Part shown: positions 16,100 through 39,775 of the stretch, piece after piece
Layout: each line of letters opens with the position of its first letter
Numbering within the stretch: the first letter of the stretch is position 1
Assembly (NCBI GenBank): GCA_047495785.1
Contig: JBLDXI010000003.1
Span: 3,658,001-3,722,000 of the forward strand
Direction of reading: 5' to 3'
Origin: Lepidodermella squamata
Taxonomy: Eukaryota; Animalia; Gastrotricha
DNA length: 64,000 nucleotides
Position numbers and translations under genes: made by a program
Notes under the pieces: generated by a model
What the model was told of the DNA's origin: nothing
What the model saw: only the letters and a program-made list of their open reading frames with translations
Databases searched by the model: none

Positions 16100-17237
16100 A
16101 TGGCTTATCAATTCGCGGCAATCTTAATTGTCCTTCTCGGTTTGGCAGTGATGGAAGTTGCACCGCAAAAATCTATCAAATCAATTGGCCAAAGTATGAT
16201 TTTCGTCACCAGTGATTCTTGAGTCGTAACGCGTCTTTTTCAGCTTGTGATCCATCGGGCTCTGATTGCGGGAAAAATGCGGTCTGTGACCAAGTCGAGC
16301 CGTGTAAAATGGGCCGGTGCGCGTGTATTTCGACCAGATATCGCCCAATTACAGGGTCGAACTCTACGACAGATTGCGCCCTAATCCTCGACGTCGGCGC
16401 CTCGTGCAATGACAGCGATGCCTCACTTCTGCCTCCATTTTCTTCCTGCATCAACTCCACAGTCACTTGTCAAGCAAAAGTGAGAATTTCATGCGATCAA
16501 CGATTTTTAAGGCTAATTTTTCTATTTTTTAGTCAAGCGATGGTAACTGTAAAGCAAGCAATGTTGTTGATAAATTTGGCGATAAATGCGGAAATTCGAC
16601 AACATGTGACTCTAGTCGAGGCTTGGTTTGCGGCAGTAACGGTCTCTGCGAGTGTTTACCGAACATGGCGCCTCAGAGTGACAGTTCATGCCGCACAGCC
16701 GGGTTCGCCGAGCCGTGTCTGACGCAGCAAGAATGCACGTATCCAGCTCTGGGAAATTCCCCATCGTCGTCGGCTTCAGTCTGCGACGGCGTGGGTGAAG
16801 CGTCGAAGAAGTGCTCATGTGACTGGAATAACAACTCGACGGAAAATTTTAAGACACGCGTCGTAATTTTCGGATTTCCAATCCCGTATCGGGCGAGTTT
16901 CAAACTGGCGCCACGGGGTGTCTGTCTGCGGATCCCGAGGGCGTCGAATGGGGAGTTGAGGCTGAATGACAACTGCAGTGTGCCGACTTTCGAGGCGTTC
17001 GGAGATCCGAAGAGCAAGAACCCGATGCCGGATGCCTTCTGTGATTGGGTCATGAACTTTGCATGCGTGCACTGCCCTGAAGATGGCGATGCAGATCTGT
17101 TCGCTGGGAAATGCCGTAGTCTCATACTACCGACTACACTGCAAACCCTTGACGGGCGGAAGTCGTCGTCTTCAATGTTAACAGCAGCAAAACTATACAC
17201 AGTTATTATCTCATTATTATTGATTTACTTCAGGTAG
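16100..17237 (+). CDS. Secreted/GPI-anchored cysteine-rich (EB-module-like) protein, 3 exons
   Basis: Signal peptide MAYQFAAILIVLLGLAVMEVAP, repeated C-x-C/CEC/CSC modules, hydrophobic C-terminus; introns near 16194-16242 and 16480-16532. Confidence 0.7.
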
Positions 17238-17270: not shown

Positions 17271-17430
17271 TCAGCCGATGAATACACTTCTCTTTGAATT
17301 CCTCGTTGAAAGCTTTCAGAGCCGTTATGATTTTTCGAAGCCTGTTGGCGGATACATATCAAGTCAATGGCTAGTGAATTCGTTTCTTGGCGATTTGGCT
17401 AGTGCTTCAATTTCTTTCAGGCGATTTGCG
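17271..17430 (-). pseudogene. Decayed, frameshifted duplicate of the CARD-encoding 3' end of the NPC1-like gene
   Basis: Reads KEIEALAK / ETNSLAID / RLRKIITALKAFNE in different frames and ends in TGTATTCATCGGCTGA, versus TGTATTCTTCGGCTGA at the gene's stop (17587). Confidence 0.65.
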
Positions 17431-17586: not shown

Positions 17587-20500
17587 TCAGCCGAAGAATA
17601 CATTTGCATCGTAGAAATTTCGAGCCCTAAGAGCATCCTCGAATTCCCTGTAAAATATTGTGATTTGAAGTCATTCGATTATTTAGATAAATTGGGATAA
17701 CTGACTTGGCATCTGCCTCATTGAAAGCTTTTAGGGCCTCCATGAATTTCGGAAGCCTATCGACGTATTTGAGCAGATACAAGTCTATAAGTCCGTCAAC
17801 AGCCAGTGAATTGGTTTCCTGTATAAAAAGAGGTTTGACACGGATGATTGAACTGCTTTGGGCATTATAACCTTAGCCTCCAAATGTTGAATCTCTTGCT
17901 GATTCACGAAATTACAGCGCAGCAGCAAATTGCGAAACGTCTTAATGCCGTCTTTCAAATCCAGTGTCGTTTGCCAATACGGTCGCCATTCGTCCTGATT
18001 AATCACATCAGCGAGTATCTTCAGCTTATTCATGGTCTCCACTCTCGGCCTGGCCGACGGCGGTGGGGGCCCATCCCTAACACCTGGAGGCCTTGCAGGG
18101 TCCGGGCTTATGGGCGGGCCATCACTAGTGCTTGCAGGCGGAGAGCCAACTTCGATCTGACCGAACTGCTGCAAATCTCTAGCGAAGGTGTTGTCTACCG
18201 TGTCATCTTCAGCCAGCATAATTGCGGTTTTCCCATCCTTATTCCGACATCTCAACCATTGCTTTCTCTCTGCGTGATTTTCTTTAAAGTGCAAAGCTGC
18301 ATATTTCAAAACGATGCCGAAGCTTTCGGGATCCTTTTTCTTGATAGCCATGATTAGGGGCGTATCCCCACCACAGCAATCTAGCCCACCACCACAGAGG
18401 CAAAACTCGTCTACAGCAGCCGGCTTTTCTTCAAGAAATTTGTCTAAGCCAGTCATGTCCTTCGAAGAAATAAGCATGAAAATCTTGTGTATGTCGTCCT
18501 GTGGCAACGTCGATCCGGCATGAGTTTTGGGAGCCGCCTGAATCGTCGTTTCACTACGAGATTTCGGCGCTTCTTCCGCCGGCTTCTTAACTGCATTTTT
18601 GACTGAACTTTGCCGTTTCCAAGTCAGAGAGAAATATGTCCCGGGCAGAATGAATCCATAGATTATCGGAATGAAGAAAGTAGCTGCAAACAACAGCCTA
18701 ACATCAGATCGCACAAATAAGGTCGCAGCAGCGAAGAGGAAGTAAGCTGGCTGTAAGTTTATCGTTTAATTGTTAACAGAAAAGTAATGGATGAAAATAC
18801 TTGCTCACCAAATGCCAGAGGAAAGAGTGCTGCCGCCCCATGCCTAGCGAATGCCGGAAGGCGACACTGTATGCGAATTGAAATGTCAAAACCACGCAAA
18901 GAATAATGTGCGATGTAGTAATCTGGCTTAACGAGCTAGCGTTGAAGCGTGTTACGGAAGTAAGGATGGCAGAAAATGAGCCAAATGTTGAAATCAAAAT
19001 GAATATCGGGTAAAACACTGCTAGTAACCACGATGCTAAATATAACTTGAAGTTATTGAGGATTCACAATTGAGGATTAAGAACTAACCTCGCGAAAAAG
19101 GTCTTTGGCTCGCGATCGGGAATGCTGACATGGTAACAAGGAAGAAAATCGCCGAGGCGGTCATAAAACCATAGTAGTAGTTGTTCCATGGGAAGCTGTG
19201 CTGAAGAAGTCTTTTCGAATGAACGGTGACCATGTAAACGTCTGAGACAGCATCTGCGATCAACGCGACATCTTTTAAAGACCGGAACCTTGCTTCGGGA
19301 TCAGAAGTCGGCTTGAAATAAGCCTCGAAAGCAATGGCTATAAATTCATGTTCAAAATTGTCTTTTCAAGTCGAACATCTCACCTTCAACTTCACCGTTG
19401 TAGTAGACCAGTCTAGAGAAGCCTGGTTGAGCACTACGTGAAGCATAATAGTCGAACAAATCATCCAGAAGGGGTAATCAATCACTCACCCAAATGGACA
19501 GTGCGGGTCTGGCTTCTGCAGCAAATATTGATGAAACAGCTGCTCGAAGTCCTCTTCCGTGGGAAGGATTTCGGGGGAATAGTCCTCACGAGCTTCGGCG
19601 CATCTCTGACACGTGCGATAACGTTCGTTAGCCCAGGAGTCTCCAGGCCTACATATCGTCCCATTCAAGTATCTGGCGCAACAAGTGCGGTACCAGTCAA
19701 TGAAACCGTCGATCGAAGAAATTTCCGCGACAGCTATACTCGAGCTAGACTGCCTTGATAACACTGCAAGTCTGTTTTGAATTGAATGTGCCTGACATCC
19801 TGGTAAGCTACAGAGGCGGTCGACAGCACTCCACATCGATAGATTCCCTTTCGGCTGGACGATGAGATAAACAACTTCTCCAATAGGAGAGTTTTCGATG
19901 AGGTAACTCAGATGCTTGCTGATATTAGAGTTCTATTTAGACAGGTATTAGTGCTCAATAGAAATGATGGCTGAATGCTGATTGCTAACCTGGGGTATCA
20001 AATCCATTGGAAGGTTCGAAAATTTCTCTTGATAAGTGCTGAAACTCGCTGCGTTCATTCCCATAGGGACCAAAAGGGCGAAGATCTTGGCGCAAAGAAA
20101 TATTTTTTAGACAAAATCACTATATAAATCGCTAATACCATTAAAGCTTTGAAGAGGTAAACAGCAATTTGAGAACCAGCACTCGTGGGGGATTTCGGAA
20201 TACGATTCCTAAGTCTATCCAGAGTTGACAGAAACAAATTATCGCCACGGATGCACTGCAAACACGTTTCTTGTAGAACCTTCAGATTACCACTATATAT
20301 TGCCTCAAACCTGCGAAAAAACAGCAGTGTACCCCATGGATACAACAACTAGAGACCAGTGGCTCAGAGTCAACAGAAATGCTGCAGCAACACATGTCAT
20401 AGCAGTATATGGGGCGTTGAAAAGCCAAGCTCCTAAACAATTTGATAAAATTGAGGAGCTTTGAGATTTATAAATACCTGGCACTAGAAATCCGATTTGT

Positions 20501-23257
20501 AGACACCTTATCAAACCGATCTTGACGTTAACGTACTGCGTAACGGCCTTCTCTAACTGAAAAAGAAAAACTGTATTCACAGTGACGAACAGAAATGTCT
20601 CGCCCTCGCCTCTTTAATTGGTGATTGCGCCAGTTGTCTTGCGGAGTAAACAACTGTAGAATCGTACTCCTGTCGAAAATATTCAGCTTTGATATTACCA
20701 TTAGACTGTCAATTATTACTGGATGTAGTTTATCGGCCTGTCCCAAGTGGAGAAGGGCATGATGAATTTCTATCATCAACATGAAGAATTCAAGCAGTTG
20801 ATTCCGATGTGGTAGAGCTAAGGCCAAGACCAGGATTTCACAGAGAGGAAGCACCAAGAGTCCGAGTACCAGACCAAGAATACCAAGCTCCGAAATGCGG
20901 CGATCTCTTATACGAATATTCGAAGCCTCAAGTTCTCTCGCCTGTCGACGTTGTCGTTTCGCTTCCTTCCACGATTGGAGAGAGGCAAAGAACGTCGGAG
21001 TCGAGCGAATTGCGACAACAAGGATTAAGCATATTATCAAAATTGCATTAAAAATGATCCCTCGTGGCCTCTCCTGCAACTCCTTATCAATATCCCGATG
21101 AAGCAGCGCCTTAATTAAGACACAGTGTTAACGATATCATTCAATGCAGATTGAAACGTACATCTGTATACCATGATTGAACGTAAGAAAATCGTTTGTT
21201 CATTTTTGCTGTTTCAAAGGTGTATTCCTTCCTGATTTCAGCATCAATAGATAAGGATAACTCATAGTAAGACGTATCACTCTCTCGCTCCTCAATCGCA
21301 AAACTAATGATTAGGCTTTGAAAGGTAGGATAATCGGTGCCTGAAAAATAGAATTAGGAGTATGAATGGCTCAATTGGAAGAGATTAACCTTTGAACCCG
21401 GCTACCACATGCCACGGATAAGTGACTTCTCCCGATCCTTTCCCAATGCAAGAAATATCTATTGGTATCCTAAAAGTTGAAATTATTCAAAAAATGTTAA
21501 TGAAATTTCAAAAGAAGATACGTGGTGCATTTAGCCATGTGGGAAACATCGTCATCAATAAAATCGACATCCTGGCTTTGCAAATAATTGAAATAGCTAT
21601 TGACAAGGCATTCGCTGTCAGCCGCCTTGTAACACATGCTCCTGATTGAAAGTTTCCCGCGGCGAAAGTCAAGGATTGCTCGCTGCAAATCTGCAACCTG
21701 CTTTCACATCGTTAGAAAATTGAAAAATGGCAAAATGATCGAACCTCAGCGAAAAAGTCGAGCTTTGAGCTGCTTGTGAGCTGTTTCATGGGGTTCACTA
21801 AAATTGTTACGTCACGATAAACCTTGCCATTCCTATAAAAAGATACAGACATAAGTTCCTGAGATTTTGGATAGTTTCTTACCGAAACAGCCGATTGAAG
21901 CGGGCCTCGTTTCCGGTTGGAAGGAACATGTTAGCTGCAGTTTCAGGGAGGAATTGATGCTTACTGGTGAAGTAGTAGACGATTGATAAAGTGAAGGCTA
22001 GCACGCTGATTATGAAGGATATTATGACAAAGAATCGATTTTTGAATTGGCTGTTTGCAAATGTCGAGAAGGCATGAGGACCACAATGATTAGCTGTGAA
22101 ATCTGATCTTGTGCTTGGCGATTGAAGCGATTGAGGCAACATGACTTCAAGCACTTCGTCCTCATTCGCAACATATTGTTGAGCATTGACTGTCGACTTC
22201 CGTGTCGTGAGGCAACAACAGCAACAACCACACCAGTTCAGAATCATGAGACCAAAAAGGACAGCCACGGAGATAGCAATGGCCCCCACTGAAAGGATGA
22301 AGATTCTATCCCATTTCTTAACCGAAGAAGGGTCACGACTTTTTAGAGGCGAAAAGCACTCTTCAGAGTTCAGGCAGTTGATACAGGAGGAGGGAAATCC
22401 TTGCCTGCGGTAGAATTTTCCAGGTTCATTACACGATCTTGCTGGCCTTGAATAGCCAGTGAACGAATTGTCATTCTTCAGCTCTTTTGGAAATGGGCCC
22501 TTGTAGCTGATTTTAAAAGTCATCGCCAGCTCATCGAGATCTTCATCTTTTTTAACTTCCAATGATCGGAAAAAATCTGAAGGCCCACATTTTCCACCTT
22601 CGCAAACAAGGTCCAGAACTGTTCGATTACTAGCCGGGAAGAAAGTATCGCTACAACTTTCGTATAGAGTTTTGGCATATTCAGGCTTCAAATAAATGAT
22701 TGCTTCCGTGACAAATGCCAGATTTTCAGCAGGGCTATGAAACAGGCCCGAATTCGGAATGGAGATGAAAGCGGATTGATTTGGGCTGCAGGCACTGTCG
22801 CAGAATAACTGCATAAGATTCTCCGAACAGGTCGGGGAAGCGTGGTATAACTCGAGAATCCTCTCGAAATACGTCATTGATAGGTAAATCAAGAATCCAT
22901 GGGGACAGCAAAGTTTACCGAGTGTTTGACTTTTACCTATTTAAGCATAAGAAACTTGAAAGTTAAAGTAATTGTGCGAGTTGAATTACCTAAAAGATGC
23001 GGGCAATATCGTCTAGCGACCATTGCAATATTCTCATCCCGACCTTTGGTTGAATTTCCAAGTGCGTTCTTTGATTTTTCCAGAACCATTACTCCATCAG
23101 ATGATTTATCCTCGTACGGATGAATCGGAGAAAAGATGCAGTAACTCCCGGCAAATCGCAAATGGGCAGCCACGGTCTGAAATGAACCCTTGAAATTTGA
23201 ACCTTAACAAATGTATTAATTATTTACCAGGAATAATATCGTCCAGCTTGGTTTCAT
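17587..23257 (-). CDS. Divergent NPC1 (Niemann-Pick C1/Patched family) protein with C-terminal ankyrin repeats and a CARD-like domain, multi-exon
   Basis: Signal MKPSWTILFL; NPC1 N-domain CSENLMQLFCDSACSPNQSAFI; middle loop CLVNSYFNYLQ; SSD-like TMs; Cys-rich loop IDGFIDWYRTCC..QKPDPHCPFG. The final TMs continue in the same ORF into GDTPLIMAI / NKDGKTAIMLA ankyrins and a CARD-like domain. Not every internal junction was verified. Confidence 0.8.
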
Positions 23258-23458
23258 AATTCAGCTTCCTTTGAGAGTGGTCATGAAACAGTGTGGAGTT
23301 CGATCGGGATTGAAAACATTCATCTTAAAAAGGCAATTAGTGCATTTTCCGACTGGTCTGCATTTTTATTGAGTTTTGACATTGGGCCAGTGCTAGACTA
23401 GATAAAAAGCCGCTATTAAAGATAAAACAGAAGCTAATGGTGTCCATTATAATCAAAA

Positions 23459-24640
23459 CTACAGTTTCTTTTCGCGAGATAACGGCGTGAATAAGCAGAA
23501 AAAGTGAAAGCGCTGCACGCACATTTTAGCTCTTCTCGCTAGTGTTTGTCTGATACCGCCACTGCCAAAGCCGAATGCGTCATCTCCTATCGTCTTACAC
23601 TGCGGGTCTTTACCACAGACGTGTCGTTTGATTTGATCTGAGAGCAGTTCAATGTTGGATTTTTGAAATCCACCTGATTGAAACTCTTCAATAAACATCT
23701 CCAGCAAAACAGTATCCCAGGTCGAAAGTGTCAATTGAACAGGGTAATAAGCGTCCAAATAGGAAAACCAGTTGGTCGGATTTTGATAAATCAACTGCTC
23801 AGTTGTCGTGTTGATACCCGGGATAAACGGGTAAAAGTCTTTACCAACATCTTTAATCACGCGAGTTGCATCTGGAAAGCAGCCAGGAGAGGTCTCTTCA
23901 TTAGAGTTCAATGTTGGGTAGTTCCCAGATTTTTGCATAGCAATCATCCTCTCTCTTGTGAAAAGAGTAACGTTCGCAAACTGGATACCAAACTTAGCCT
24001 CCTTAACAAAATGAGTGCCATAGTCTTTGACAAAGCCTTCAAATAGCTTCCGAGAGGTGTCATTATCCTTCTGATGCGGCTGGCTGAACAGGCGGTAAAC
24101 TGATCTGGAGAAATCTAGCCGCAAATGAGCTCGCTTGAAGATATTCAGCATTTTAACGCTGATTGATCGATTATGGCAGATGATATGGTTCAGATGTAAG
24201 CGTGTTTCCTGATTGAAAGAATTGTTGTATGTGCTGTACAATGAACTTCTAGAAAACGCGGTGTAGGGATTGCCAATTTCATCCGAATCGCTGTTATCCC
24301 TCAACGGATGCTCAATAGAGTAAGCCCAAGCCTTGTCATTTTCTCGAAAAATCAATTCCTTCGCGAAGCTGTTCATATCATTGTACCACTTGTTGAGCAA
24401 ACATCGGCAGTAGTTAGGGCCAGGCGCATACTCGATATCGAATAGATTGTCGTACTTCCCTGTATCTGAAGCATTTTTGACTGTTTCGAGATTGAAGGTA
24501 GGTTTGAAACTCTGCGACTCCAATGGGAAGTTTGACATGATATCATAGCCGCGACCGATGGCGTCGTAACTTTCGACGATTTCTTGAAAAATCGTACATT
24601 TCACCGTAGTAATCAACAAAGCGTAAAACAGGATTATCAT
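23459..24640 (-). CDS. Secreted MACPF-domain protein (MACPF only), intronless
   Basis: Signal peptide; IGRGYDIM; FVKDYGTHFVKEAKFG matches the MACPF signature. Confidence 0.85.
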   Translation of the reverse strand: MIILFYALLITTVKCTIFQEIVESYDAIGRGYDIMSNFPLESQSFKPTFNLETVKNASDTGKYDNLFDIEYAPGPNYCRCLLNKWYNDMNSFAKELIFRENDKAWAYSIEHPLRDNSDSDEIGNPYTAFSRSSLYSTYNNSFNQETRLHLNHIICHNRSISVKMLNIFKRAHLRLDFSRSVYRLFSQPHQKDNDTSRKLFEGFVKDYGTHFVKEAKFGIQFANVTLFTRERMIAMQKSGNYPTLNSNEETSPGCFPDATRVIKDVGKDFYPFIPGINTTTEQLIYQNPTNWFSYLDAYYPVQLTLSTWDTVLLEMFIEEFQSGGFQKSNIELLSDQIKRHVCGKDPQCKTIGDDAFGFGSGGIRQTLARRAKMCVQRFHFFCLFTPLSREKKL

Positions 24641-24709
24641 TGAATGGTTTTATTTAAAAAATGTAATGACTGGAAGCGAGATTAGTTTAGATTAATAAAA
24701 AATGACTTT

Positions 24710-26539
24710 TCAAGTTCTGATGCAGAGGTACTGAGCTGCGAATGCGTACGATTTTGAATAACCAACGTAGCCAATTTGCATTCGTTGGTAGCCGGGAGGG
24801 CATTCCAATGATCCAGTAATTTCATTCGCTTGCTCAATTTCCGCACACTGGGGGCTTGTTTTGCAACTGACAAGATTTTTGCCCGGATTACCAGCCATTT
24901 TTTGATAACCACTGTTGATTGGAGCACCTTTAATGTTTCTCTCGTTGAGGCATATTACAAACTGCCAAGAGAAGAACTTCCCGTAGACGTAGTCTCTGAA
25001 ATTTCTTGGACAGCTCCTAGTCTTCCTCGGGCTCAGTGGGTTTGACGAATGACTTAGCTCGCCAATGGCACCGAGCTTGTTAGACATGCATTCTTCGGTT
25101 TCAACTGTAGAGCTGTAGTCGGCAAGTTCCCAATCATGGTCATCACTTTCGCAGCTCTTGACTCGAACATCCCTGTTCTCACGAATGAACATTCCACCGA
25201 AGTGAGTTTCCTCCTTCGCATCCCGATTGCTTAGTATGCATACTTTGTGGGTCACTGTGCACGTTTTTGATTCATCATTGGCAACAGTCCAAGTTACAGA
25301 TCCAAAGGTCGTTGGATTGTAGCCAAGATTGCAAGCTGGCCTGCCCGAGGAATGGAGAGGGTTCGAAATGTTGCTAACCTCCTTGCATGTGCTGATCTGA
25401 AATGCTCCTCCGAAGGTTGGCTGCTCGTTCTTTTTCATCGGCTCATCGGCTACCTTCCCACACATGGCAGGCGCTTTAGGGTAGAGAACTAGCTCACAAT
25501 AGTCTTCCAAGTAGCTTTCAAGGGTGGTCTTGCGATCGGCGACAGAATCTGCATCTGAGTCAGGAAACAAGTCTTGCGACATCAAACTTGTTATTGGTTT
25601 CATCGTCAGGGATAAGGCAGCGGGTGATTTCTTAGTGGCCTCCAGCCAATCCGAAACTTGGTTTGACGGAGGTTTCGGCCCAAGGGAGAAGTAATCAGCT
25701 TTGTTACCGAAAATAGTTCTGTTTTTCGCAATAACAGCTTTTGCCAGAACTTCTGGATCGATATTGCCGATTTTCGCGAATTCCTTGGGAGTGTAGACAA
25801 CTCGGAGGCCGAAAATGCTTCCAAGCTTGACATCCGTTACAACATGCGTCCCAAATTTGTCGAGGAACGGTTGGAAAGTTTGTTTCAGCTCGCTTCGTAG
25901 TGGCATAACGGTAGGCAGAGCCATTACGGCGGTATTAAAGGTTTTCGTGACTGGTGGGTTGTTGCTAGCTTTCACTGATGAACAGAATGAGGTCTGGCAG
26001 GTGAAATAGACGATCAACATCTTCCTTCCATGCAAAAACTGAGCTTGAATAGCATCGAGGTTGGTTTTCTGGGCTTCTCCATTGTACTTGAATGACGCTT
26101 CATTCACGTATGGATCGTGGATTTCCAGCCTTTGATCGAGGAACTTCTTGTAATCTGAATAGGAATCCAGGACTTTAACCGATGGTGTGAACGAGCATCT
26201 TTCAGAGCAATAAATGGGCTGTAGATACTCGCTTGTGACAGATCGGCCATGAAGTTGCCAGTATAGGCGCATGGCGAAACTCGACTGGCGTAGCCCGGGA
26301 TCAGTGCCATCGATCGAGAAGGGATTCGACTCAGCCAGGTTGTAGCCAGCTCCGAGATAGACCTTGTAGGCTTCAATTTTCGGGTCTGTAGGTAGTTTCG
26401 GGACTTGTAAACAAAGTCCCATCGGAGTTTTGAAGTGGCGGCATAGTTGGCTCGCAGCTTCTATTGTTTTCGCATCTTCCTCCAATTTCGCCGCATTGGC
26501 GAACGCGATTAAAAACGGCGCAAATATCAAGGAAATCAT
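24710..26539 (-). CDS. MPEG1/Perforin-2-like MACPF protein lacking the TM anchor, intronless
   Basis: Signal peptide; YLGAGYNLAESNP..DPG; FLDKFGTHVVTDVKLG; P2-type repeats FGGAFQ..NPL..CNLGY, FGGMF..NPL..SCPRNF and NEITGSLECPPGY; no C-terminal TM. Confidence 0.85.
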   Translation of the reverse strand: MISLIFAPFLIAFANAAKLEEDAKTIEAASQLCRHFKTPMGLCLQVPKLPTDPKIEAYKVYLGAGYNLAESNPFSIDGTDPGLRQSSFAMRLYWQLHGRSVTSEYLQPIYCSERCSFTPSVKVLDSYSDYKKFLDQRLEIHDPYVNEASFKYNGEAQKTNLDAIQAQFLHGRKMLIVYFTCQTSFCSSVKASNNPPVTKTFNTAVMALPTVMPLRSELKQTFQPFLDKFGTHVVTDVKLGSIFGLRVVYTPKEFAKIGNIDPEVLAKAVIAKNRTIFGNKADYFSLGPKPPSNQVSDWLEATKKSPAALSLTMKPITSLMSQDLFPDSDADSVADRKTTLESYLEDYCELVLYPKAPAMCGKVADEPMKKNEQPTFGGAFQISTCKEVSNISNPLHSSGRPACNLGYNPTTFGSVTWTVANDESKTCTVTHKVCILSNRDAKEETHFGGMFIRENRDVRVKSCESDDHDWELADYSSTVETEECMSNKLGAIGELSHSSNPLSPRKTRSCPRNFRDYVYGKFFSWQFVICLNERNIKGAPINSGYQKMAGNPGKNLVSCKTSPQCAEIEQANEITGSLECPPGYQRMQIGYVGYSKSYAFAAQYLCIRT

Positions 26540-26633
26540 TTTAGTAAAAATTCTAGGGAAAGAAGATTAGAGAACAAATAATTTATTTATCGAATGAGAT
26601 CGCGGGTCTTATAAAAATAATTCTGAAAGAGAT

Positions 26634-27236
26634 TCACACATCTGGTAAAGGCTTCTGAGGAAGAAGCCGAGTTGAAGATGGTGAATCTGGTAACTTTGGT
26701 TTAAAGCATAGCATTTTCTTCATTTTGAAAATATAGACCACGCTGAATATTGTTACAATACAAAAAGCTGTCAGGCAAATAGCCATTATTAGAGTAACCA
26801 TGCCAATTCCTGAGTCTGGTTGCTTGATCGCTGCTTGCATTTGAATCACAGCCTCAGTTACTGGAATAGCTTCGACAGTTGATGTTACTCGAGGCTTAGT
26901 TGATGAAGTTGTGATTTGAGCAGTCGAAGGAGGAACTGTCACTTTTGTGGACATTTTTGTGGTAGGATTACTATTGCAAAGGTCATCGAAGCAGCAATCA
27001 GCATTCAGGCAATCTTGAGCGGACGCGCAACTCCTCATGTTGAGATGGCCGTATTCCAAAATTGCACAGGCGTGGTCATTTGAATCCGACTCGCACGTCA
27101 TGATTTGAAAATTCTCTTGATTCTGGCACGTCACTTTGTCATCGATGGAATTCGGCAGGCACGAATAGCATTTGAGAACATCGCCTGATGACAGGCTGAC
27201 CATAGTGGTTAAGAATGTTAGCAATAATTTCGTCAT
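26634..27236 (-). CDS. Ly6/uPAR (three-finger, CD59-like) domain type I membrane protein with mucin stalk
   Basis: Signal peptide, LKCYSC...CCFDDLCN with 10 Cys, Ser/Thr stalk, TM, short Pro-rich tail. Confidence 0.88.
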   Translation of the reverse strand: MTKLLLTFLTTMVSLSSGDVLKCYSCLPNSIDDKVTCQNQENFQIMTCESDSNDHACAILEYGHLNMRSCASAQDCLNADCCFDDLCNSNPTTKMSTKVTVPPSTAQITTSSTKPRVTSTVEAIPVTEAVIQMQAAIKQPDSGIGMVTLIMAICLTAFCIVTIFSVVYIFKMKKMLCFKPKLPDSPSSTRLLPQKPLPDV

Positions 27237-27789
27237 GTTTGCAGAATGAAAAAGGGCATAATAAAAATTGCTACCTCAATCGCTTTGTTTGCACGGTCAT
27301 TTTTTCATGTAAAAAACAATAATAACTCGCGAGATATCAGGAGGAGATATTTTATATCGTTCGCTCGCACTCGGCATATAGTATTTCTCTGTTACTGGGA
27401 ACGAAGCGAGGTCTAAATGCACTGTTTACGTTGGCCAGCTACGCCTAAAGCTGGATACTGAGCTGGACCAGATAATGCACTCAGAGTTCTAAACTTGGAG
27501 AAGAACCATCGCGTTTAAATTTAGCCCAAATTTCCTGCGAAGGCACAATAAATGAACTCACGCCGGTAAATGCGATGCGGTTTCGATTTCCATTATACGG
27601 TCTCGACAAGTTCGGAAATCGATTTTCAATGGAAATGAATCGTCTGCATTGATTAGATAAAATTCCCACCCTTATCTTTACGTCGCGCAATTCCTCTGAA
27701 AAAAACATGGTTCTACGCCTCACTGAGGGCATTTAATCATTCATAAAACCACCTTTTACACAGCTAGGTTGTATTGTCTGATTCGCAGG
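27237..27789. promoter_or_regulatory. Probable bidirectional promoter between the Ly6 gene (-) and the NEK-ankyrin gene (+)
   Basis: Head-to-head start codons ~550 bp apart; positional inference only. Confidence 0.4.
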
Positions 27790-29958
27790 ATGCTGAGGTC
27801 GAGTGCCGACTACAAGATCATTAAGAAAATCACGCAAGGGGGATTCGCCGATGTGTACCTAGTAAACCTTAAGGCGCACGGGGATCAGGAGTTTGTCCTG
27901 AAGCAAGTTTCTATTTCGACCATTGAACAAAACGGCGGCCAGAAAAGTGTGGCATTGACACTTGAAGAGGTAAAGATGCTCTTACGGTCCAGCAGTACTT
28001 GTTAACAAACCTTTGCAGGCAAATTTAATGGCAAAACTGCAGCATCCGCATATTGTTCGCGTTGTCGGGGCTTTCATAGGTTAGTTCGGCTTCTACTCAT
28101 TATTCAAACATGGACCAATACCTTTTCCTTACAGAAGGGGACTACTTTCGATTCGTCATGGAGTACTGTGAGAAAGGTTTGTTTCTTCTTATTGAAATTC
28201 GACGTGTGATCAATCGAGGGCAAATATTCAGGGGATTTGCAAACGTACATTTACAATCGAAAGGGCACTAAGATACCAGAGCAACAAATCCGAGAATGGT
28301 CTTTACAACTAGTTTTAGTATTGAAGTATCTTCACGACCATAACGTTCTGCACCGGGATGTTAAATGCAGGGTACGTTTGGCTGAATTCTTCGAAAAATC
28401 GATTTACGAAAATGCCAATAACAGAATGTGTTTCTTACATCGAATGTTCGGTTTATCAAACTCGGTGACTTTGGAATTGCAAAGCAGCTTGACAGGTTGT
28501 AAATCTGAATTTTGGATTTTTTGAATTACGAAGGCTTCAAATCATTTAGACCCGATCAAGAGGCGACAACGTTAATTGGCACTCCGGCTTATTACGCTCC
28601 AGAATTTTGTGAGAAGCAAATCTACACGTCAAAGTCCGAAGCATGGTCTTTGGGAATTCTGATTTTCAATTTAGCCATGCTGAAAGCTCCGGTGAGTTAC
28701 CGGTATTATTCATAATATTTCAGGATTGAAATTTTTTAATAGTTTGCATATGACGGGAATCTGGTTGGACTGTTCGCAAGCATAACTCAGTAAGTTCGTA
28801 AAAATTAGTTCAGAATGACAATTCAGGTTTTCCTTTGAAGATCTGCCCCGCCTCAAATCACAGCCGAATACTCCAGCGAACTGCGCGATTTTGTCGACAA
28901 GTTATTGCTGAAAAATCCGAAAGATCGCATGTCGATATCTGAATCTTTGACCCATCAATTTCTGATTTACGCAATTACGGAGGCCTGTGATGAAGCGATT
29001 GGCTCGCATCCTAATGCAGCCATCAAGAGAGCGAGCGAGCATGCATACATCAGTTCTCCAATGGTCCTGAAACCGTTGGTAACCGCTCGACAACTCAGCC
29101 CTAATTCTACCGTGAGACCATTTCCAGCCATTTTCCTTCCAAAATCCAGCTTGATTCCCTTTTCAGAGACCTGTCGACATTTTTAATGCTGTTCTAACGT
29201 CTCGAAGTCTGACTCTTCTCCGCGAGTTGATTTCAAACGGAAACAAGCAGATGATTTTGAATGCAAGAGACAAAAATGGCGACACGGTCCTGCATGTAGC
29301 ATCTCGTTATGGCAAAATAGACGTCATTAACATGCTGATAGTCGACGATCGTCAATGCATCACCCCGGAATGGTTGAATCAGAAAAACGAAAACAACGAC
29401 GGGGCAATCCATATTGCCACGGTTCGAAGTGACATCGAAATCGTCAAGAAAATAGTTCGAGCTGGTGGGAATTTGAACCTGCTCGGGGGGTTAGGCGATA
29501 ATAATGAAACTCTGAGCAGAAAGCTGAACCAGCGATTCGCGCCAGAATCCTTCAAGAACATCGAATTCACCCCACTCCACTTGGCGGTTTTGTACAACCA
29601 TGCAGCTACCACTCAGTACTTGGTGACTCACTTGAAAGCCGATGTAAACGCACTTGATAGCAATGGAAATCTTCCGATACATATCGCTTCTCTACTTGGT
29701 CATCTGGATATTGTCAAGTTATTCGTCACGCAATGCCGCCAGTCGGTGAATGTCCGCGGCCAGGATAAATTGACGCCGTTGGATTTTGCGCAGAATAATG
29801 GTCATACGGCGCTGAGTGATTTCCTACGCAAAAATGGCGGCATGTGTGCGCAAGAACTGAATGCGCTCTCACAGTCGAGCCCGCCCGTTTTCAACGCCCC
29901 GGTTCGCTCTTCCGAAGGTTTCGGAAGCGAGCTGAAGATTTCAACGTCTGTTCAATAG
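27790..29958 (+). CDS. NEK (NIMA-related)-like Ser/Thr kinase fused to C-terminal ankyrin repeats, ~8 exons
   Basis: QGGFADVYLV, VLKQV, LQHPHIV, VMEYCEKG|DL, HRDVKCR|NVFL, KLGDFGIAK, GTPAYYAPE; a phase-0 intron (29112-29166) joins in frame to GDTVLHVA / TPLHLA / LPIHIA / TPLDFA ankyrins. Confidence 0.88.
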
Positions 29959-30180
29959 CTTGGTGTCTTATATATTGCTAAATATACTGCCTAATTTGTA
30001 TGCTTTTCTCGTCTTTCTGATGCGCGTTTTCTTTTTTCTTGTTTTCGATATTTTGTGCTACTACCTCTTTCAGCTTCACATCAATCATGATGCGTAAAAA
30101 TTCAGCTATAAACGCTTGCAGCTTTATTAAATTCTGACTGGGATACACGAGTATTCTCGATTTTATTGTTTTAATTTGCT

Positions 30181-31118
30181 TCAAGCGTCAGCAAAGTCTT
30201 GACGGCATGCTCTGCGAAAAAATAATAAAATTTATTTGACTAACAAATTTGAGCTTTGAAACTAACTCAGCAATTTCTGGCTGATAGTCGTCAAGGGCTT
30301 GCAAAAACGCCTCCCATTTCTTTTGATCTCGAACAACATATGTGTCCAGAAGCTCGTCCACGGCAAGAGAATTAGTTGCCTTCAAGGAATGCATGAAAAA
30401 CGTCTAAATTCGACCAAATTGAATCTTACTTTGGCATCGATTGTAGCTATTTCAGTGCTCTTAAAGATTTCGAAGGCTAAAAGCTTAGTACGGAATAGAC
30501 GATCGCCATCGTGGAGTTGTAATTCAGTGTGAAACGTTTCGCGCCACTTGTTCAGCACCTTTTCACGCTTTTTTCTCATCGCCAGCATTTGCCTAGGATC
30601 CATTGCTTTCGGCTTGCTATCGGGCACAGGTTGGGGATTTGCAGGCTCCTTTGGTTTTCTGATAATGTGATCGTTTAAAGGACCTAAATTTAAATTTGGA
30701 ATTCATTTCACCTGTTTGGCTCATTCTCAACTTTGGGAGCTTCTCGTTTAGGTTTAAATTTTTCTAACAGGATTTTAGCTGCTTCTGAATCTTCCTTTGA
30801 CGGGTACTCGCCCTCCTTAGGATGGGCAATAGCCTCCAGTTCAGCTAGAATCGCGTCGACAATTGAGTCCAGCCGAATTTCTCTAGCTGCTTGAACATAA
30901 GCCTCGAGGTCTCGCTCCAGATTAAAATTGAGAATTTCACAAAATTTAGCAACGCCCTTGCGCTTGTTAGTGTCGTATTCGCTCTCGATTTCTTCGACGT
31001 ACTCGAAGTGTATTCTCGTCGCATCTTTCGAGTTTATCTGCCGCACCCATGCTGGAGCGTCGAAAGTCTTCACTTTCAGCATGTTTACAACTCGAATTAG
31101 ACCAAAAGGGGACGACAT
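30181..31118 (-). CDS. Bipartite death-fold adaptor: N-terminal death-domain-like, C-terminal CARD-like, 4 exons
   Basis: N-term helical domain (AWVRQI..EEIESEY..LEAYVQAAREIRLDSIVDAI), Pro/Lys linker, then KWRETF..EIATIDAK|ATNSLAVDELLDTYV..FLQALDDYQPEIAE|ACRQDFADA*. Confidence 0.7.
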
Positions 31119-31184
31119 TTAGGCGTGATAGAGTGCACGAAAAGTTGTTTATTCCAAAAAAAACTGACTAGTGAGCGAAAAATG

Positions 31185-32297
31185 CTATCTTTTAATGACT
31201 CCCGATACCTCTTGTAAAAGATAAGGGAGAAGCAGAAGCAGCCATATTTTGTACGATAGGCGAGGCCTAAATGCACCATTGCAGTCGTAAGCTGTAGCAG
31301 TTATCATGAAATTGAACGGCTGCTGATAAGCATTCGCTCGCTGGCAGGCAGTCACCTCGACAGTGACAGCGTTGCTAGGTGAAAGTATATTGAAGGGACA
31401 TGAAGGTGGGCTGCCTCGAGAAGCTTCAGCCTATATGAAAAAAGTCATAGAGACATACGCTACCCATAGATGCATTTAGGACTTACAATTATGCCAATTC
31501 CCTCATTTCTCAGGAGATTGAAATCGCCGATTCTAATCCTGCATTCAGTCGGCCACTGACCGCACTCGCTGCTGAAGATGGATAGGTTAACTGCAGCGCC
31601 TTCCGGGGCGGCAATAACGAAACTGCAAGTGTCTATGAAATCCGGGAGATTGGCAGGCTGATTTCCGGATCCGCCTTAAAAGAGCATTTTTCAATCAACT
31701 GAAAGATGAAAGATGAGAGGCCATACCTAGAATCGTATATCGCTCATTTAAATCTATCCCATAAATCGTCGAAGTTGGTCTGTTACAGTGTTGACCGGAA
31801 TTCGTGTCAACTAAACATAAATAGGGTTAAATTTGAAAAATTATTAGGCTAATCTTACTTATGTGTTCAGTTATTTGCGCCCCTTCCCGCTCATAGCTGT
31901 TTGACATCGAGACTGGACGACTGCTCGCCGGTAGTCGATATAGGAATGGATAGGAATACATAGGAAGCGGCACTATTAGAGGCCTGACTCTGTAAGGACT
32001 TGATAGGATTATAGGCCTTGAATTGCCGGTGTAATAAGTCGGCCCAGTTCGTATCACACTACTTCCGGTGATGATTGGCGGAGATTGGTACGACGGAGGC
32101 CTGTAGACTGGTTGACTAGCTGGTTGAGGCCTAGGTTGGGGCCGCATATTACTCGAACTAACGAAGGGCGCGCTTGGTCTGCTGAACACCGGCCTTGAGG
32201 CACTGGAACCACCCCCAACTCGCGAGGCTCCAAACGTAACTTTTGCATTGATACCAGCGACGGAAATGAGCGGTAATAAGATTAGTAAAATCGGCAT
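31185..32297 (-). CDS. Secreted/GPI-anchored protein with Pro/Ser/Arg-rich N-term and a CUB-like domain
   Basis: Signal peptide; spliced exons give DTCSFVIAAPEGAAVNLSI...SPSNAVTVEV...FMITATA; hydrophobic C-terminus WLLLLLPYLL. Confidence 0.65.
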
Positions 32298-33531: not shown

Positions 33532-34849
33532 ATGTCTATGAAATTAATTCATAGTATCAGTCGAAGAGGGATAAGCTTCCTCTCAAGCGAGGCAAAAGAG
33601 TTCCTGAAGCGAGAAGTTGCGAAATTCGACCCTAGCATTCCAGTTCAAAAAGCGAAAACTCCCCCTGGATCATGGTACACAACCCCCGAATTTTACTATC
33701 TAGACCAACAGGCAATTATCCGGCCTAATTACTGCGCTGTAGAATCTCAACATTTAGTCGCGGAGAAGAACAGCTACGTCACGTCTTCATTCGCCGACGA
33801 GCAGTACCTTTTCACAAGGCCCGAGGCTGAGTCTGACGTGAAAGGCTTTTTCAACATTTGCCGGCACCACGGCGTTATCCTGGAATGGGGTGCTTGCGGC
33901 AAGAAGTCAGCCTTCGAATGTCCCTATCATGCTTGGACGTTCGACAACAAAGGAAATTTGATTAAAACAACAAAAATGCGAGGCATCGAATGCTTCCAGG
34001 CGAAAAGCTTCGGCCTTAACCCTGTCAGTGTTTTTACAGGGCGGTGGCCGATAATCTTCGCGAAACCAGGCGCTCATTTTACAACACCTGGCTCGTCCGA
34101 GGATAACATGAAGACGCTTTTCGAGCAATCTAGACAGTGTGAGAAGGAGTTGTTCTTCAAACAGGAACACATAACCTCGCCGCAGAATTACATCCATGTC
34201 AAGCGGAAGGTCTACCATGTTAAATGTAATTGGAAGATTTACATCGACAACTTCCTGGATGATAGCTACCACTTTCCTTACGTTCACAAAGCTACCCAGG
34301 CTAAAATCTGCGATCTCCCAACTTATCAGTAAGACTTAATTCGCTGATGGAAATAATGTGAAAATTATTAATGGTAATTTTTTCAGCACTATTATTCATA
34401 AGACATCGGAAAAAGCTGGCAATCACTACCTGTTCTCGGTCCAGTCTTGCAGCTACAAGCACAACAAAGCGGCTTCAGTTAAATTTTTTCACATCTATCC
34501 GAATGTAATGCTCCAGGTTTACAACGAAAAGCCTTGGTTGGATGTTTACTACATCATTCCCACGGGTCCGGAGACGATGACCCTCATCAGTGATTGGTTT
34601 GGGAAACGTGACTTTTTACAATCCGTGTCGAAAGAGGAGGCCGATAAGGCGATTCAGGCGAATTTCGAGTATGAAGACCAGGCTCAACGGGAGGATGTTG
34701 AAGTTTCAGAGATGCAGCAGATGGGCTTCAGAAGCAGTGGCGTACCCTTCGGTCGGTACGTGCCATCTGTCGAGGCTGGTATGTATTCATTTCACCAACG
34801 GCTCGTCTCCGAATACGCTGCATTCCTAAATTCGGAGCATAAAAACTGA
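33532..34849 (+). CDS. Choline monooxygenase-like Rieske non-heme iron oxygenase, copy 1, 2 exons (intron 34329-34386)
   Basis: TPPGSWY, NICRHHG...CPYHAW Rieske motif, NWKIYIDNFLDDSYHFPYVH, QREDVEVSEMQQMG, GRY; basic transit-like N-terminus. Confidence 0.9.
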
Positions 34850-36896: not shown

Positions 36897-37149
36897 CAAA
36901 GCCAAATCTAATGTTTAAGTTCTAAGTTCTAAAAGAGTTCCAGCGAGAGTTTTATGAAGACATTTTTGTACGACCTCTTTTCGGTCCAAAACTGAACATT
37001 TTTAACAGGCCTCAAGCAGTTAAAAATAACCTAACCCTTTTGAACCGGTATAGTGAAGATAAATTTCGCAAACGAAAAAACAAGAATATGCAACAAAAAC
37101 ATCGAAATCCAGTCGATTATTTAGGCTAAGATCAATTAAACCTCAAATA

Positions 37150-38018
37150 CTATTCACGGCGCAAAAATAATCCAGTTTCATAGCTATAGATATGGAGGCA
37201 ATTTTCTGACGAGCTAGCGCTGTGGCCTTGTTGGTGTCCGGCGGAAACCTTCACCTCAGTTCTCCAAGATTTGCCGAAATTCTCGACAAGGTATTCATTC
37301 CAAAATTCTGGCGAATAATAGTGGATAATAGCATTTGAGGCACCTTTCAACTTCACAGATTCCAACGTCAGCTTGGTATGATCCTGAAATAAGTATATTA
37401 TAAAGCAATTCGAATATGAAAAATTCAAGTAAAATTACGTCAAATCGGTCATCTACCCAGAACCTCGCGAAGGGCCACTGTAGAAATCTGGTCTTCCATT
37501 CGTGAATTCTTATGGAAACGATTTTTTTGCGGCGGTCTCTGGTGACTGTCATGGCCCAAGTTTTCAGTCTGCCCATCCAGTCTACGATTTTGACCCTCCT
37601 TTGATCGTCATAATTTCGATTTACTGCGCCTTTCTCAAAAGTCTCAGTCAGTTGTTTAAATTTCGATGCGGTGACCAACAAGTCGATTTCGTGGTCAAAG
37701 GCAATCAAATCCTTCTCCCGCTTGAATCCTGTGCAAAATTTTCGAATTAGTGAAACTCAGTTTTTCGAAAAGTTCAATCTTACCCAATAGAGTTCCGTAT
37801 GCGGGCACGAGTTTAATATCGAAATATTTCAAAACGTTGCGTTGAAGACGACGGAGAAAATGGCCTTGCTTCGTTCGCTTCAGGCGAGGCAAATATAGGC
37901 AGGCCAGATGTGGCGCAGGATTGTCAAGGCCTTGCTTCTTCCACTCTTTATCGTATTTCTTCCGTTTGCTACTAACATTTCCAGAATGGTAACTATCCGA
38001 GTTGTTCGCGTTGGCCAT
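37150..38018 (-). CDS. LicD/fukutin-family nucleotidyltransferase-like protein, copy 1, 3 exons
   Basis: Spliced AYGTLLG|FKREKDLIAFDHEIDL (LicD GTLLG..R....I..D.D.D motif); C-terminal EYLVENFGKSWR. Confidence 0.8.
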
Positions 38019-39087
38019 CACGAAAATATGATCGATTTTAAGGACTGAACAACCTATCATGAAAAAAGCATACACGAATAATTGAATATTTCTGTATATA
38101 TGTAAAATGTAACCGGCCTATTTTAAAATGCAATTCAAAGTCTATCTATCGGATAGGTTCAGCTCGTGCTAAAAGAAGTTAAATTGAACAATCCTACGCG
38201 AGTAAAATTGTTGTCTCGCCTCCATTTTGCCCGCGCAGGCGGTGGTGACAGAATTTAATAAACAGAATTTAAATTATAAACAAATATCGAATAGCAATAA
38301 CTGCGGAAGTTGTATCGAATTTCTTGAATTTTATGTTGTTGGTAAAATCTGACCGTCGGCCACTAATAGGGCACAAGCTGGATACAATAGAATTTGATAC
38401 TAAGCTGGTTTTTCATAATTTTCTTGGAGCGTTTTGGCTATAAGGCGCCGCCTTTTGGCAACAGCTTGACTCCGTCTGGTGGATAAGAAATCGTATATCG
38501 CGCGGTGCCAAAGCTGCCACTTTACTGATTGTAACCTGAGAATTTGAGTTGTTAAAATCGCGATCATGGATAACTTCGAGTTCTCAAGTTACACGCCGTG
38601 CTGTCATTCAAAGTTGATGCAAATTAGAATAACGCACTCGACATTTTGTGCCAACTTCCCTAGGTCTATACTAACGACCAGATTAATTTGAAAACTGAAT
38701 TATATTATATATAAAATTCATAAAAAACCAAAGTAATTTCCGCTGAAAAAATCAAGGAAAAAATGGCTGAATAGTTCAAGCACGCCAAGCATGGAAAAAT
38801 ACCTGCGTGATTTCAGATTAGCCTTGGCATCATAAATTATTTTGATGAATGCTGTTTTGGAGTTGAAACAAGAGGACCTTTAGTGAAATGACTTCAAGCG
38901 GCAATGTCAAAGAATTTCATTTTCAGAGCTTTCAATTTTCAAGTATACTAAAAAGGCGCCAGTTCTCAGCTCAAAATTAAAAAAAAAATTAATTCAAGAG
39001 GCCTCAGATGAAATTGTGCCTTCTATTTTCGATCGCCTTGCCACGGCGGTTTGAGTCTTTAGTCTTCCATCATATCTCAATTTTTTG

Positions 39088-39775
39088 CACTATTCCGGCC
39101 CGCTCGTGTTCCCCCGCGCGCGCGCTCCTATTGGTTGGCGCGTTTTACGCTTGAATTTATTACGCAAGATATAATGGCGCGCAGCAAAATCTCAATGTAC
39201 AAGTCCGAAATTCAGAATAACAGGGCACTATAAGTGTTGATATGCGTGGAATAAAAAGGCGAAATTTTCGTTTTTCGCTTTTTCTCAAGTAGAATCAGAA
39301 ATTGAAAAGAATTTTCCCAGATTTCAGCATGACGCCCCGCGGCTATTTTTGGCCGCAATGTCTTGTAGTTTAATTTTTCATAAAAAAGCGTGTTCTTCGG
39401 AAAAAATCAATCGCATTTTTTATTTTAAATCAATATTTTATTATTGATTTTTATTTTAAATGCTTACAGCCGGTATTTTTTGATACGAACTGAAAAGTTG
39501 GAGAGTCATCAAATAAGGGCGTGTGGGCCGCCAAGATGCAGTCAAGTTATTGTCGATTATAAACAATACAGCCCGATGTTCAAGCATTGCATTTTTCTTG
39601 TTGTTTGAAAAGCATGCAGCATGCAACTTGCTCGAGTTATAAGTTATAGAACGGGCGCGCTCAAGGTGCGATCAAGTGCGCGAGCGGGTGAGGCTATAAT
39701 TAACTAGAATTGTTGCGCAAAGAGCCACAACCAATAGGAGGGCGCCGAGGAATCACCGGCGGACCGGAAAATGTG
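39088..39775. mobile_element. Degenerate TIR element inserted between LicD copies
   Basis: Imperfect ~45-bp inverted ends (CAC..TTCCGG...CTCCTATTGGTTG) flanked by duplicated TCAATTTT; the paralogous site near 35835-35860 lacks the insert. Confidence 0.5.

Follow-up and report, generated by a model that had tools for sequence, protein, structure and literature searches.

Do genes for immune-type proteins that lie side by side in an animal genome work together, or are they merely neighbours by descent? We addressed this question for a cluster of seven genes in the gastrotrich Lepidodermella squamata, within a stretch of 64,000 nucleotides (C3:3658001–3722000 of the 121-Mb, 151-contig assembly), which is hereafter called the window and whose positions serve as feature coordinates. 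The initial annotation had read these genes as a co-regulated defence module comprising a membrane receptor with ankyrin repeats and a CARD, two proteins with the MACPF domain, a Ly6-type transmembrane (TM) protein, a NEK-type kinase, an adaptor and a surface protein. The window holds a real and unusually tight group of immune-type genes, and three of them lie next to each other again on a second contig, C17. Judged from the sequences, the conserved core is an NPC1-like gene with a CARD-like tail, a MACPF gene resembling MPEG1/perforin-2 and a gene for a Ly6-like TM protein; the seven-gene unit is not repeated.

The seven genes occupy 17.6–32.3 kb of the window, and maps of open reading frames (ORFs) and of stop-free stretches contained no further sizeable ORF between them, which bears out the claim of seven adjacent genes in ~15 kb. 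On the minus strand, the order in the direction of transcription is Ly6-like, MACPF2, MACPF1 and NPC1-like, with spacers of 94, 69 and 201 bp, respectively. The Ly6-like gene and the kinase gene (plus strand) are divergent and ~550 bp apart, the kinase and adaptor (minus strand) genes converge at a distance of 229 bp, and the end of the seventh gene (minus strand) lies 66 bp from the adaptor ATG. Five of the spacers agree with the earlier description of mostly 65–220 bp (observed range, 66–229 bp); the gap between the Ly6-like and kinase genes does not. Open-frame (stop-free) coverage is 0.87 in the cluster and 0.61 in the rest of the window; the cluster was thus rightly described as tight relative to its surroundings, although its density exceeds that of the flanks by less than an order of magnitude. 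Introns in this compact genome, whether seen in cDNA or inferred, are 46–71 nt long and all have GT-AG ends, and the eight that were confirmed as cDNA joints, all in the kinase gene (window 27970–29166), are strikingly uniform, at 49–55 nt. Because intron lengths are so narrowly distributed, modelling of splice paths from the sequence alone is workable in this genome.

The second locus was found by examining C17:1–74 kb, which was chosen because NPC1_N and MACPF matches fell within 2 kb of each other there. An NPC1-like gene with a CARD-like tail, an MPEG1-like MACPF gene and a Ly6-TM-like gene are again adjacent at C17:23.6–31.5 kb, in what is an old paralogous locus. The NPC1-like gene (minus strand; model 27992–23617, ~1200 amino acids) has the N-terminal domain and the C-terminal luminal domain and lacks an ankyrin stretch; its CARD-like tail is split by an intron at the position seen in the window. 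Directly upstream, across a spacer of ~650 bp, lies a MACPF gene of 592 amino acids that is the nearest paralog of MACPF2 genome-wide (113 bits over amino acids 45–607; the next-best paralog reaches 61 bits, over the MACPF part only). The Ly6-like gene, which has two exons, lies on the other strand; it is inverted relative to the window and still adjacent. After a signal peptide, its product has a 9-Cys domain (CYYC ... CVFCDQDDCN) and a stalk, and it ends in a TM helix with a short tail. The two NPC1-like proteins share 25–30% identity in their N-terminal and C-terminal luminal domains. Microsynteny, which had been proposed as a check in related genomes, thus held within this genome for the trio of NPC1-like–CARD, MACPF and Ly6-TM genes, whereas the other genes were absent; MACPF1 has just a weak distant relative, ~7 kb from the trio. 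The end of this contig (C17:1–16500) carries four units that are 97–100% identical and arranged as inverted repeats, with a MACPF gene (350–430 amino acids) and a truncated NPC1-like 5΄ part (N-terminal domain, TM1 and the start of the middle domain). The units were either amplified recently or only appear to have been, through an artefact of the assembly.

The most concrete mechanistic link within the window is offered by the CARDs of the receptor and the adaptor. According to its gene model (three exons, ~275 amino acids; 30188–31118, minus strand), the adaptor consists of an N-terminal helical domain, a linker and a CARD (30245–30603, minus strand), the last being interrupted by a 50-nt intron (30380–30429). 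The spliced CARD of 103 amino acids matched the Pfam profile PF00619 with an E-value of 4.1e-7 and 30.4 bits, compared with a cut-off of 23.9 bits, and the match spans profile positions 2–83 of 85; the exon of its second half by itself gave an E-value of 0.0019. The tail domain of the NPC1-like protein (17684–18042, minus strand; 53-nt intron at 17819–17871) had no Pfam match when searched alone, and PDB searches with profiles of both CARD half-exons returned chance matches only. The tail domain and the adaptor CARD nevertheless share 40% identity across 70 amino acids (blastp E 1e-10), and the intron occupies the same position in both, after '..EAK' or '..DAK'. On the basis of this homology and the common intron position, we regard the tail domain as CARD-like.

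Domains of this type are rare. Whole-genome six-frame Pfam scans returned 0 matches for CARD and 7 for Death, and the CARD scan is uninformative because every family member seen has an intron within the domain. Using profiles of both halves, we located ~6–8 domains of this CARD type in 121 Mb, namely the two in the window, those of a two-CARD gene at C48:689–690 kb, one at C48:670 kb, the tail of the C17 NPC1-like gene, a partial copy at C17:17.8 kb and a weak candidate on C10. Two members only 12 kb apart are not the chance expectation, and local duplication and function can both fit this observation. Indeed, a copy of the last CARD exon that has decayed and is frameshifted (17290–17420, minus strand) lies 3΄ of the stop codon of the NPC1-like gene, as a direct repeat (17301–17353 and 17716–17768) that is 75% identical and 415 nt downstream; it translates as 'ETNSLAIDLI' and, past the frameshift, as '..ANRLRKIITALKAFNEEF'. 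Exon duplication therefore does occur at this locus. As the receptor tail and the adjoining adaptor bear the same rare CARD type, a homotypic link between the two is plausible.

Several relatives of these CARDs were observed elsewhere. The gene at C48:689.3–690.2 kb (minus strand) encodes two CARDs in tandem, each split by the family intron, and its upstream exon of 155 amino acids is unrelated to the N-terminus of the window adaptor. Another gene with the same CARD subtype lies at C48:670.1–670.4 kb. The partial copy on C17 (C17:17770–18250, minus strand, corresponding to L004:3770–4250) is an extra NPC1-like CARD tail with no NPC1 body upstream; it reads '..GLQLLALQAK', followed by a CARD second-half exon (profile E 1e-13), and is adjoined by a gag-like retroelement ORF with a CCHC zinc knuckle (L004:5061–6047).

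The adaptor had been labelled as a protein with a death domain (DD) and a CARD. The CARD part of this label passes the Pfam cut-off, whereas the death domain was unsupported. The N-terminal exon of 135 amino acids matched no Pfam profile at E ≤ 5, including Death (PF00531). Its AlphaFold2 model is all-helical with approximately seven helices at low confidence (pLDDT 54); the best Foldseek match of this region (E 0.58) was to unrelated helical proteins, and its Atlas neighbours were unrelated. With a model of such low confidence, the failure of Pfam, AlphaFold2 with Foldseek and the Atlas to support a death domain does not prove its absence.

The NPC1-like gene itself (17627–23257, minus strand) was modelled computationally as a least-cost splice path of 17 exons encoding 1588 amino acids. 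A large exon (21883–22936, minus strand) encodes most of the NPC1 N-terminal domain (Pfam NPC1_N, E 1.4e-24), TM1, the Cys-rich loop and TM2, and a genome-wide NPC1_N scan recovered the same gene at C3:3680350–3680922; two small exons upstream provide the signal peptide and the first cysteine motifs. The exon for the C-terminal luminal domain (19490–19932, minus strand) matched canonical NPC1 in tblastn searches (C20, E 2e-13; C55, E 2e-10). The genome has three canonical NPC1 genes, on C55, C20 and C15, to which amino acids 63–308 (N-terminal) and 913–1112 (C-terminal luminal) of the model are homologous, the latter region with E-values of 2e-12 and 3e-9; the hydrophobic peaks of the model also follow the order and positions of the NPC1 helices. 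No exon matched the Patched or sterol-sensing domain at E ≤ 1, and genome-wide match lists for PF02460 and PF12349 omit the window gene and its C17 paralog, yet include all three canonical NPC1 genes. Because the NPC1 domains are homologous whereas the Patched and sterol-sensing domains are unmatched, the protein appears to be an NPC1-family scaffold with a degenerate transport core. In addition, a stretch that presumably corresponds to a conserved '..GVDN..' segment of NPC1 reads 'ALPHRNQ' here.

The last large exon of this gene covers the final TM helices and continues into the cytosolic tail (~310 amino acids). This tail comprises a weak ankyrin-like stretch, a Pro-rich linker and the first half of the CARD, with the second half beyond the 53-nt intron. 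Ankyrin repeats, which had been part of the proposed architecture, gave only an Ank_2 match with an E-value of 0.08 and no ankyrin match in the PDB; membership in the NPC1 family and the CARD-like tail were upheld. The claim of sterol sensing fared less well, as the domain responsible was not detectable. A further NPC1_N-bearing gene was observed at C20:1214276–1215102, 7 kb downstream of the canonical NPC1 gene of that contig, and in BLAST comparisons this gene and the window gene are equally close to the C17 NPC1-like gene.

Both MACPF genes exceeded the Pfam cut-off for this family (PF01823, 21.5 bits). MACPF2 (24710–26539, minus strand), a single exon for a secreted protein of 609 amino acids, did so clearly (E 1.4e-14, 55.2 bits) and encodes a signal peptide, the MACPF domain and a beta-rich C-terminal domain, the ORF ending in '...AAQYLCIRT'; we found no hydrophobic segment at the C-terminus and hence no membrane anchor or cytosolic tail. 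In an exhaustive HMMER search of 1.84 billion outside proteins, the best match of MACPF2 had an E-value of 1.2e-18 at 27% identity, and none of these representatives covered residues 456–608. A word-based homolog search returned no match, and an exact-protein look-up returned no record. An AlphaFold2 model built from an alignment of 56 sequences (pLDDT 78, pTM 0.70) resembled the MACPF domain of TgPLP1 (Z 21.8, root-mean-square deviation 2.9 over 260 residues) and MPEG-1 (Z 18.6). The best full-length Foldseek matches were pre-pores of MPEG-1/perforin-2 (E 1.6e-16), and isolated P2 domains (6sb4, 6sb1) were matched with E-values of 1e-6 to 1e-5, the TM-score being just 0.26. On the strength of this model, 'MPEG1-like' is a reasonable description of the architecture of MACPF2, though the protein is anchor-less. 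Cnidarian MACPF toxins were among its nearest Atlas clusters. The contigs of the two best outside MACPF matches carry no Ly6 or NPC1 neighbours, and those matches are not orthologs. MACPF1 (23459–24640, minus strand) is likewise a single exon for a secreted protein, of 393 amino acids, which is very divergent (Pfam MACPF, E 1e-7, 32.8 bits) and bears a YGTHF motif; blastp at E ≤ 1e-3 detected no match with MACPF2 or the C17 MACPFs. The two earlier labels, MACPF and MPEG1-like MACPF, are therefore consistent with our results. Elsewhere in the genome there are ~17 other MACPF loci.

The third member of the core (26634–27236, minus strand) encodes a signal peptide, a 10-Cys domain and a stalk rich in Ser and Thr, followed by a single TM helix with a tail of ~30 amino acids. 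Its cysteine pattern (LKCYSC...CCFDDLCN) has the spacing of the LU domain and the CCxxxxCN ending. The Pfam CD59 profile matched below its cut-off (E 0.0017; 18.5 compared with 33.9 bits), and the nearest Atlas clusters were three-finger families throughout, with lead-level scores of 0.75–0.78. A three-finger (Ly6/uPAR) fold is accordingly probable from its sequence, and the label of a Ly6-type TM protein can be retained at that strength. A genome-wide scan with the CD59 profile missed this very gene and hence says nothing on the co-location of Ly6 and MACPF genes elsewhere. That the protein acts as a CD59-like protector, as the earlier reading supposed, would be pure analogy.

Taken together, we favour the reading that the locus is a real, transcribed, lineage-specific immune-type cluster that grew by local duplication and whose three-gene core operates as sensor, effector and partner, and we would give this reading close to an even chance. 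Under this proposal, the MACPF proteins would be pore-forming effectors released to the phagosomal or endolysosomal lumen or to the cell surface. The Ly6-TM protein may be their host-side membrane partner, either as a CD59-like guard or as a tether for the anchor-less MPEG1-like protein. The luminal domains of the NPC1-like protein would register a lipid, a microbial ligand or a membrane disturbance, and the protein could report to the cytosol through CARD–CARD recruitment of the adjoining adaptor. The NEK-like kinase with its ankyrin repeats would be a local accessory of this copy, outside the conserved unit, and so would the secreted product of the seventh gene. That the trio has been kept at ~25–30% identity despite the inversion, along with the continuing duplication of MACPF/NPC1-like units, fits a birth-and-death immune-type cluster and raises the odds of functional coupling. 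The recurrence is not proof of coupling, since both loci go back to a single ancestral arrangement.

Several observations weigh against this reading. One old chance adjacency that was copied as a block would equally yield two matching loci, and the models of the NPC1-like gene and of the C17 genes are computational. In BLAST comparisons, each of the two NPC1-like genes is at least as close to canonical NPC1 as to the other, so that a single block duplication is argued mainly by the MACPF pair, by the Ly6-like neighbour and by the CARD tail that both loci have. Alignment of the two Ly6-like proteins puts their cysteines in register and is weak (z ~4 compared with shuffled sequences). Neither the kinase, the adaptor nor the seventh gene has a paralog on the examined stretch of C17, and what remains of the proposed seven-gene module is thus the three genes that were kept as neighbours. 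Finally, a complex prediction for the Ly6 ectodomain with MACPF2 scored 0.02, a 'no answer' that is not evidence either way.

Much of this could also be expected if the locus were a neutral neighbourhood, in which fast-evolving, lineage-specific families became adjacent by chance and by tandem and exon duplication and were then copied as a block to C17 with no joint function. We consider this explanation a serious contender, with an appreciable chance that nevertheless falls well short of even. The genome is compact overall, and its short introns and high open-frame coverage extend to the flanks; local duplication is active, as the decayed CARD exon and the near-identical units at the start of C17 indicate; four of the seven genes, including MACPF1, are not in the C17 copy; and the window and C17 loci are not independent observations. 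What a neutral history accounts for less readily is that adjacency has outlasted both the divergence of the proteins and the inversion of the Ly6-like gene, and that receptor and adaptor share a CARD type with so few copies genome-wide. Random neighbours, moreover, would match known partnerships (that of the Ly6 fold with MACPF, and that of CARD with CARD) less well than this combination of domains does.

The favoured reading can be extended to a stronger one, which we regard as rather doubtful. In this version, the three genes would form a heritable unit to 'sense, kill and protect' that duplicates and diversifies as a block, like bacterial defence systems. An NPC1-derived receptor would have lost its transport chemistry and gained a CARD by which it signals membrane or luminal danger directly to death-fold adaptors. 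This receptor would be kept beside an anchor-less perforin-2-like pore former and a Ly6-type membrane protein, the partner that guards or tethers the pore former.

We next consider transcription, which bears on a further explanation. Contigs of the public sequencing run X2 were aligned to window positions 23300–29299. The run is cDNA, because its contigs show the eight GT-AG joints of the kinase gene and a cDNA-synthesis primer at two ends. All four genes that were compared with it (MACPF1, MACPF2, the Ly6-like gene and the spliced kinase) are transcribed, with contigs over MACPF1 at 23603–24533 and over the Ly6-like gene at 26621–27250, and no coverage from this run was found in the intergenic region between the Ly6-like and kinase genes. 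If Ly6-like, MACPF2, MACPF1 and NPC1-like genes were an operon-like run transcribed from one promoter, their spacing and linkage would reflect shared transcription rather than cooperation of the proteins. Each of the three same-strand spacers indeed has an AATAAA and then, immediately upstream of the following ATG, a pyrimidine-rich sequence that ends in AG; the entire spacer between MACPF2 and MACPF1 is crossed by one cDNA contig. However, assembled contigs cannot establish a single transcript, and the cDNA ends at 26538 (the MACPF2 ATG) and at 27250 (14 nt upstream of the Ly6-like ATG) abut a SMART-type primer (..GCAGTGGTATCAACGCAGAGT..), with no spliced leader visible at either. On C17, furthermore, the orientation of the Ly6-like gene is reversed, and the NPC1-like and MACPF genes are separated by a spacer several times longer. 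We therefore judge an operon to be an improbable basis for the linkage. At 26538 and 27250, the primer is not in the orientation in which template switching would place it at a 5΄ end.

A DNA run of the same species (X1) has alleles in common with the cDNA run, and the variants listed comprise 20 synonymous and 7 non-synonymous changes in MACPF2, and 6 and 4, respectively, in the Ly6-like gene. These counts are those of constrained coding genes, and they indicate that MACPF2 is under purifying selection. Two blocks of MACPF2 show very high allelic divergence, at 24911–24953 (6 differences in 43 nt) and at 25745–25853 (11 in 109 nt); the differences are mostly synonymous and common to the DNA and cDNA runs, and possibly represent old alleles or gene conversion.

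There is little probability in a non-immune role, such as lysis of prey or food, venom, or membrane remodelling in gametes or development, in which the MACPFs would be lysins, the Ly6-TM protein would provide self-protection and the NPC1-like protein would handle lipids, since, although MACPFs also serve as toxins and developmental factors, the Atlas neighbours of MACPF2 include the cnidarian toxins and TIR, LRR and NACHT were not found in the ORFs and exons scanned against Pfam, the receptor CARD and CARD adaptor point to death-fold signalling rather than bulk lipid transport, the sterol-sensing and transport core is degenerate, and the fold of MACPF2 is closest to that of MPEG1.

The two genes of the cluster that stand outside the core and the CARD pair, apart from MACPF1, are the kinase and the seventh gene. 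The kinase gene (27790–29958, plus strand; nine exons, ~581 amino acids) encodes a NEK-like Ser/Thr kinase in which ankyrin repeats form the C-terminal part. The VAIK-type Lys ('FVLKQV') and the HRDVKCRN, DFG and APE motifs are present in the protein as defined by cDNA; its exons match Pfam Pkinase, and the ankyrin repeats match Ank with an E-value of 6e-23. For two kinase exon pieces the best PDB match was NEK1, followed in one of them by NEK2 and NEK7. The earlier description as a NEK-type kinase with ankyrin repeats is thus well founded. The seventh gene (31185–32297, minus strand; gene models of four exons, ~313 amino acids, with one splice junction uncertain) encodes a protein with a signal peptide, in which a Pro-rich region precedes a Cys-containing domain and the C-terminus is hydrophobic. 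It had been called a CUB surface protein, but neither its single exons nor the spliced domain of 135 amino acids matched CUB (PF00431) at E ≤ 5.

The cluster is flanked by genes for a cathepsin L-like protease, an MGAT4-like glycosyltransferase and Rieske oxygenases. The oxygenase genes, two in number, lie to the right of the cluster at 33532–34849 and 51738–52535 (plus strand), 18 kb apart, and encode Rieske [2Fe-2S] proteins of the ring-hydroxylase type that are Neverland- or choline-monooxygenase-like. To the left, a gene at 16219–17237 (plus strand) encodes a secreted protein that is rich in Cys, has a hydrophobic C-terminus and matched no Pfam family; the gene converges on the 3΄ end of the NPC1-like gene at a distance of ~390 bp, and could be an eighth surface protein of the neighbourhood. 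On C17, 6 kb from the trio, at least three genes resembling those of Cys-loop receptors ('FPFDEQTC' motif and four TM helices) are arrayed in tandem within 37000–43000. Scans of the window for tRNAs and Rfam families returned no match, and the kappaB-like motif GGGRNWYYCC occurred 4 times, compared with 3.3 expected, and 0 times inside the cluster.

Each member of the core resembles a known protein in part. MACPF2 is like MPEG1/perforin-2 (PDB 6u2l, 6sb3, 6sb4) in being intronless and in having a signal peptide, a MACPF domain and a beta-rich C-terminal domain matched by P2; it differs in its lack of a TM anchor and cytosolic tail, in an identity of only ~13% and in the low TM-score of the P2 match. 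CD59, which has the Ly6 fold, binds the MACPF proteins C8alpha and C9. In the window, a gene whose product has a small ectodomain of the Ly6/uPAR type, with ten cysteines, adjoins MACPF genes, and Ly6-like and MACPF genes are paired again at the second locus. Unlike CD59, however, the Ly6-like protein of the window has a TM helix and a short tail rather than a glycosylphosphatidylinositol anchor, and the CD59 match was sub-threshold; to our knowledge, vertebrate CD59 is not linked to the complement MACPF genes. The NPC1-like model keeps, in the order of NPC1 and NPC1L1, the N-terminal domain of sterol-binding type, TM1–TM2, the middle luminal region, the C-terminal luminal domain and the final TM bundle, whereas it has no detectable sterol-sensing/Patched domain and adds the long cytosolic tail that ends in a CARD. 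NPC1 resides in endolysosomal membranes, and MPEG1 acts in phagosomes.

The signalling genes allow similar comparisons. CARDs signal through homotypic assembly, and, as in the systems of RAIDD, BCL10, ASC and NOD1/2–RIPK2, a receptor and a small adaptor here bear the same CARD subtype, which would permit homotypic recruitment. The receptor differs in being a polytopic membrane protein rather than an NLR or RLR, the second domain of the adaptor is helical rather than a DD, PYD or kinase, and no CARD caspase was identified here. The presence of a NEK-family-like kinase gene beside death-fold signalling genes recalls the licensing of NLRP3 by NEK7; since this kinase has its own ankyrin array and lies outside the conserved trio, the resemblance would be one of analogy only. 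Like prokaryotic defence islands and vertebrate immune gene complexes, the locus brings together genes for sensing, signalling and effector functions, shows local duplication and is rich in allelic variation, but it is an animal locus of unrelated gene families whose clustering may be merely inherited. A full-text search of the literature returned no description of an NPC1–CARD protein or of a MACPF–Ly6 gene cluster.

The components of this cluster are thus well supported, and from them, by analogy with the systems above, we infer what its function may be. Should the three genes act jointly, they would offer an example, rare among animals, of unrelated genes for a sensor, an effector and self-protection being inherited as one block. 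The receptor would then be of a new type, an NPC1 scaffold wired to CARD signalling, which would tie endolysosomal membrane biology to death-fold immunity, and the relationship of Ly6 proteins to MACPFs that is known from CD59 and complement would extend far outside the vertebrates. Even if the genes are uncoupled, the NPC1–CARD architecture, the divergent pair of MPEG1-like genes and the small CARD family with its shared intron would be markers for the evolution of immunity in this lineage.

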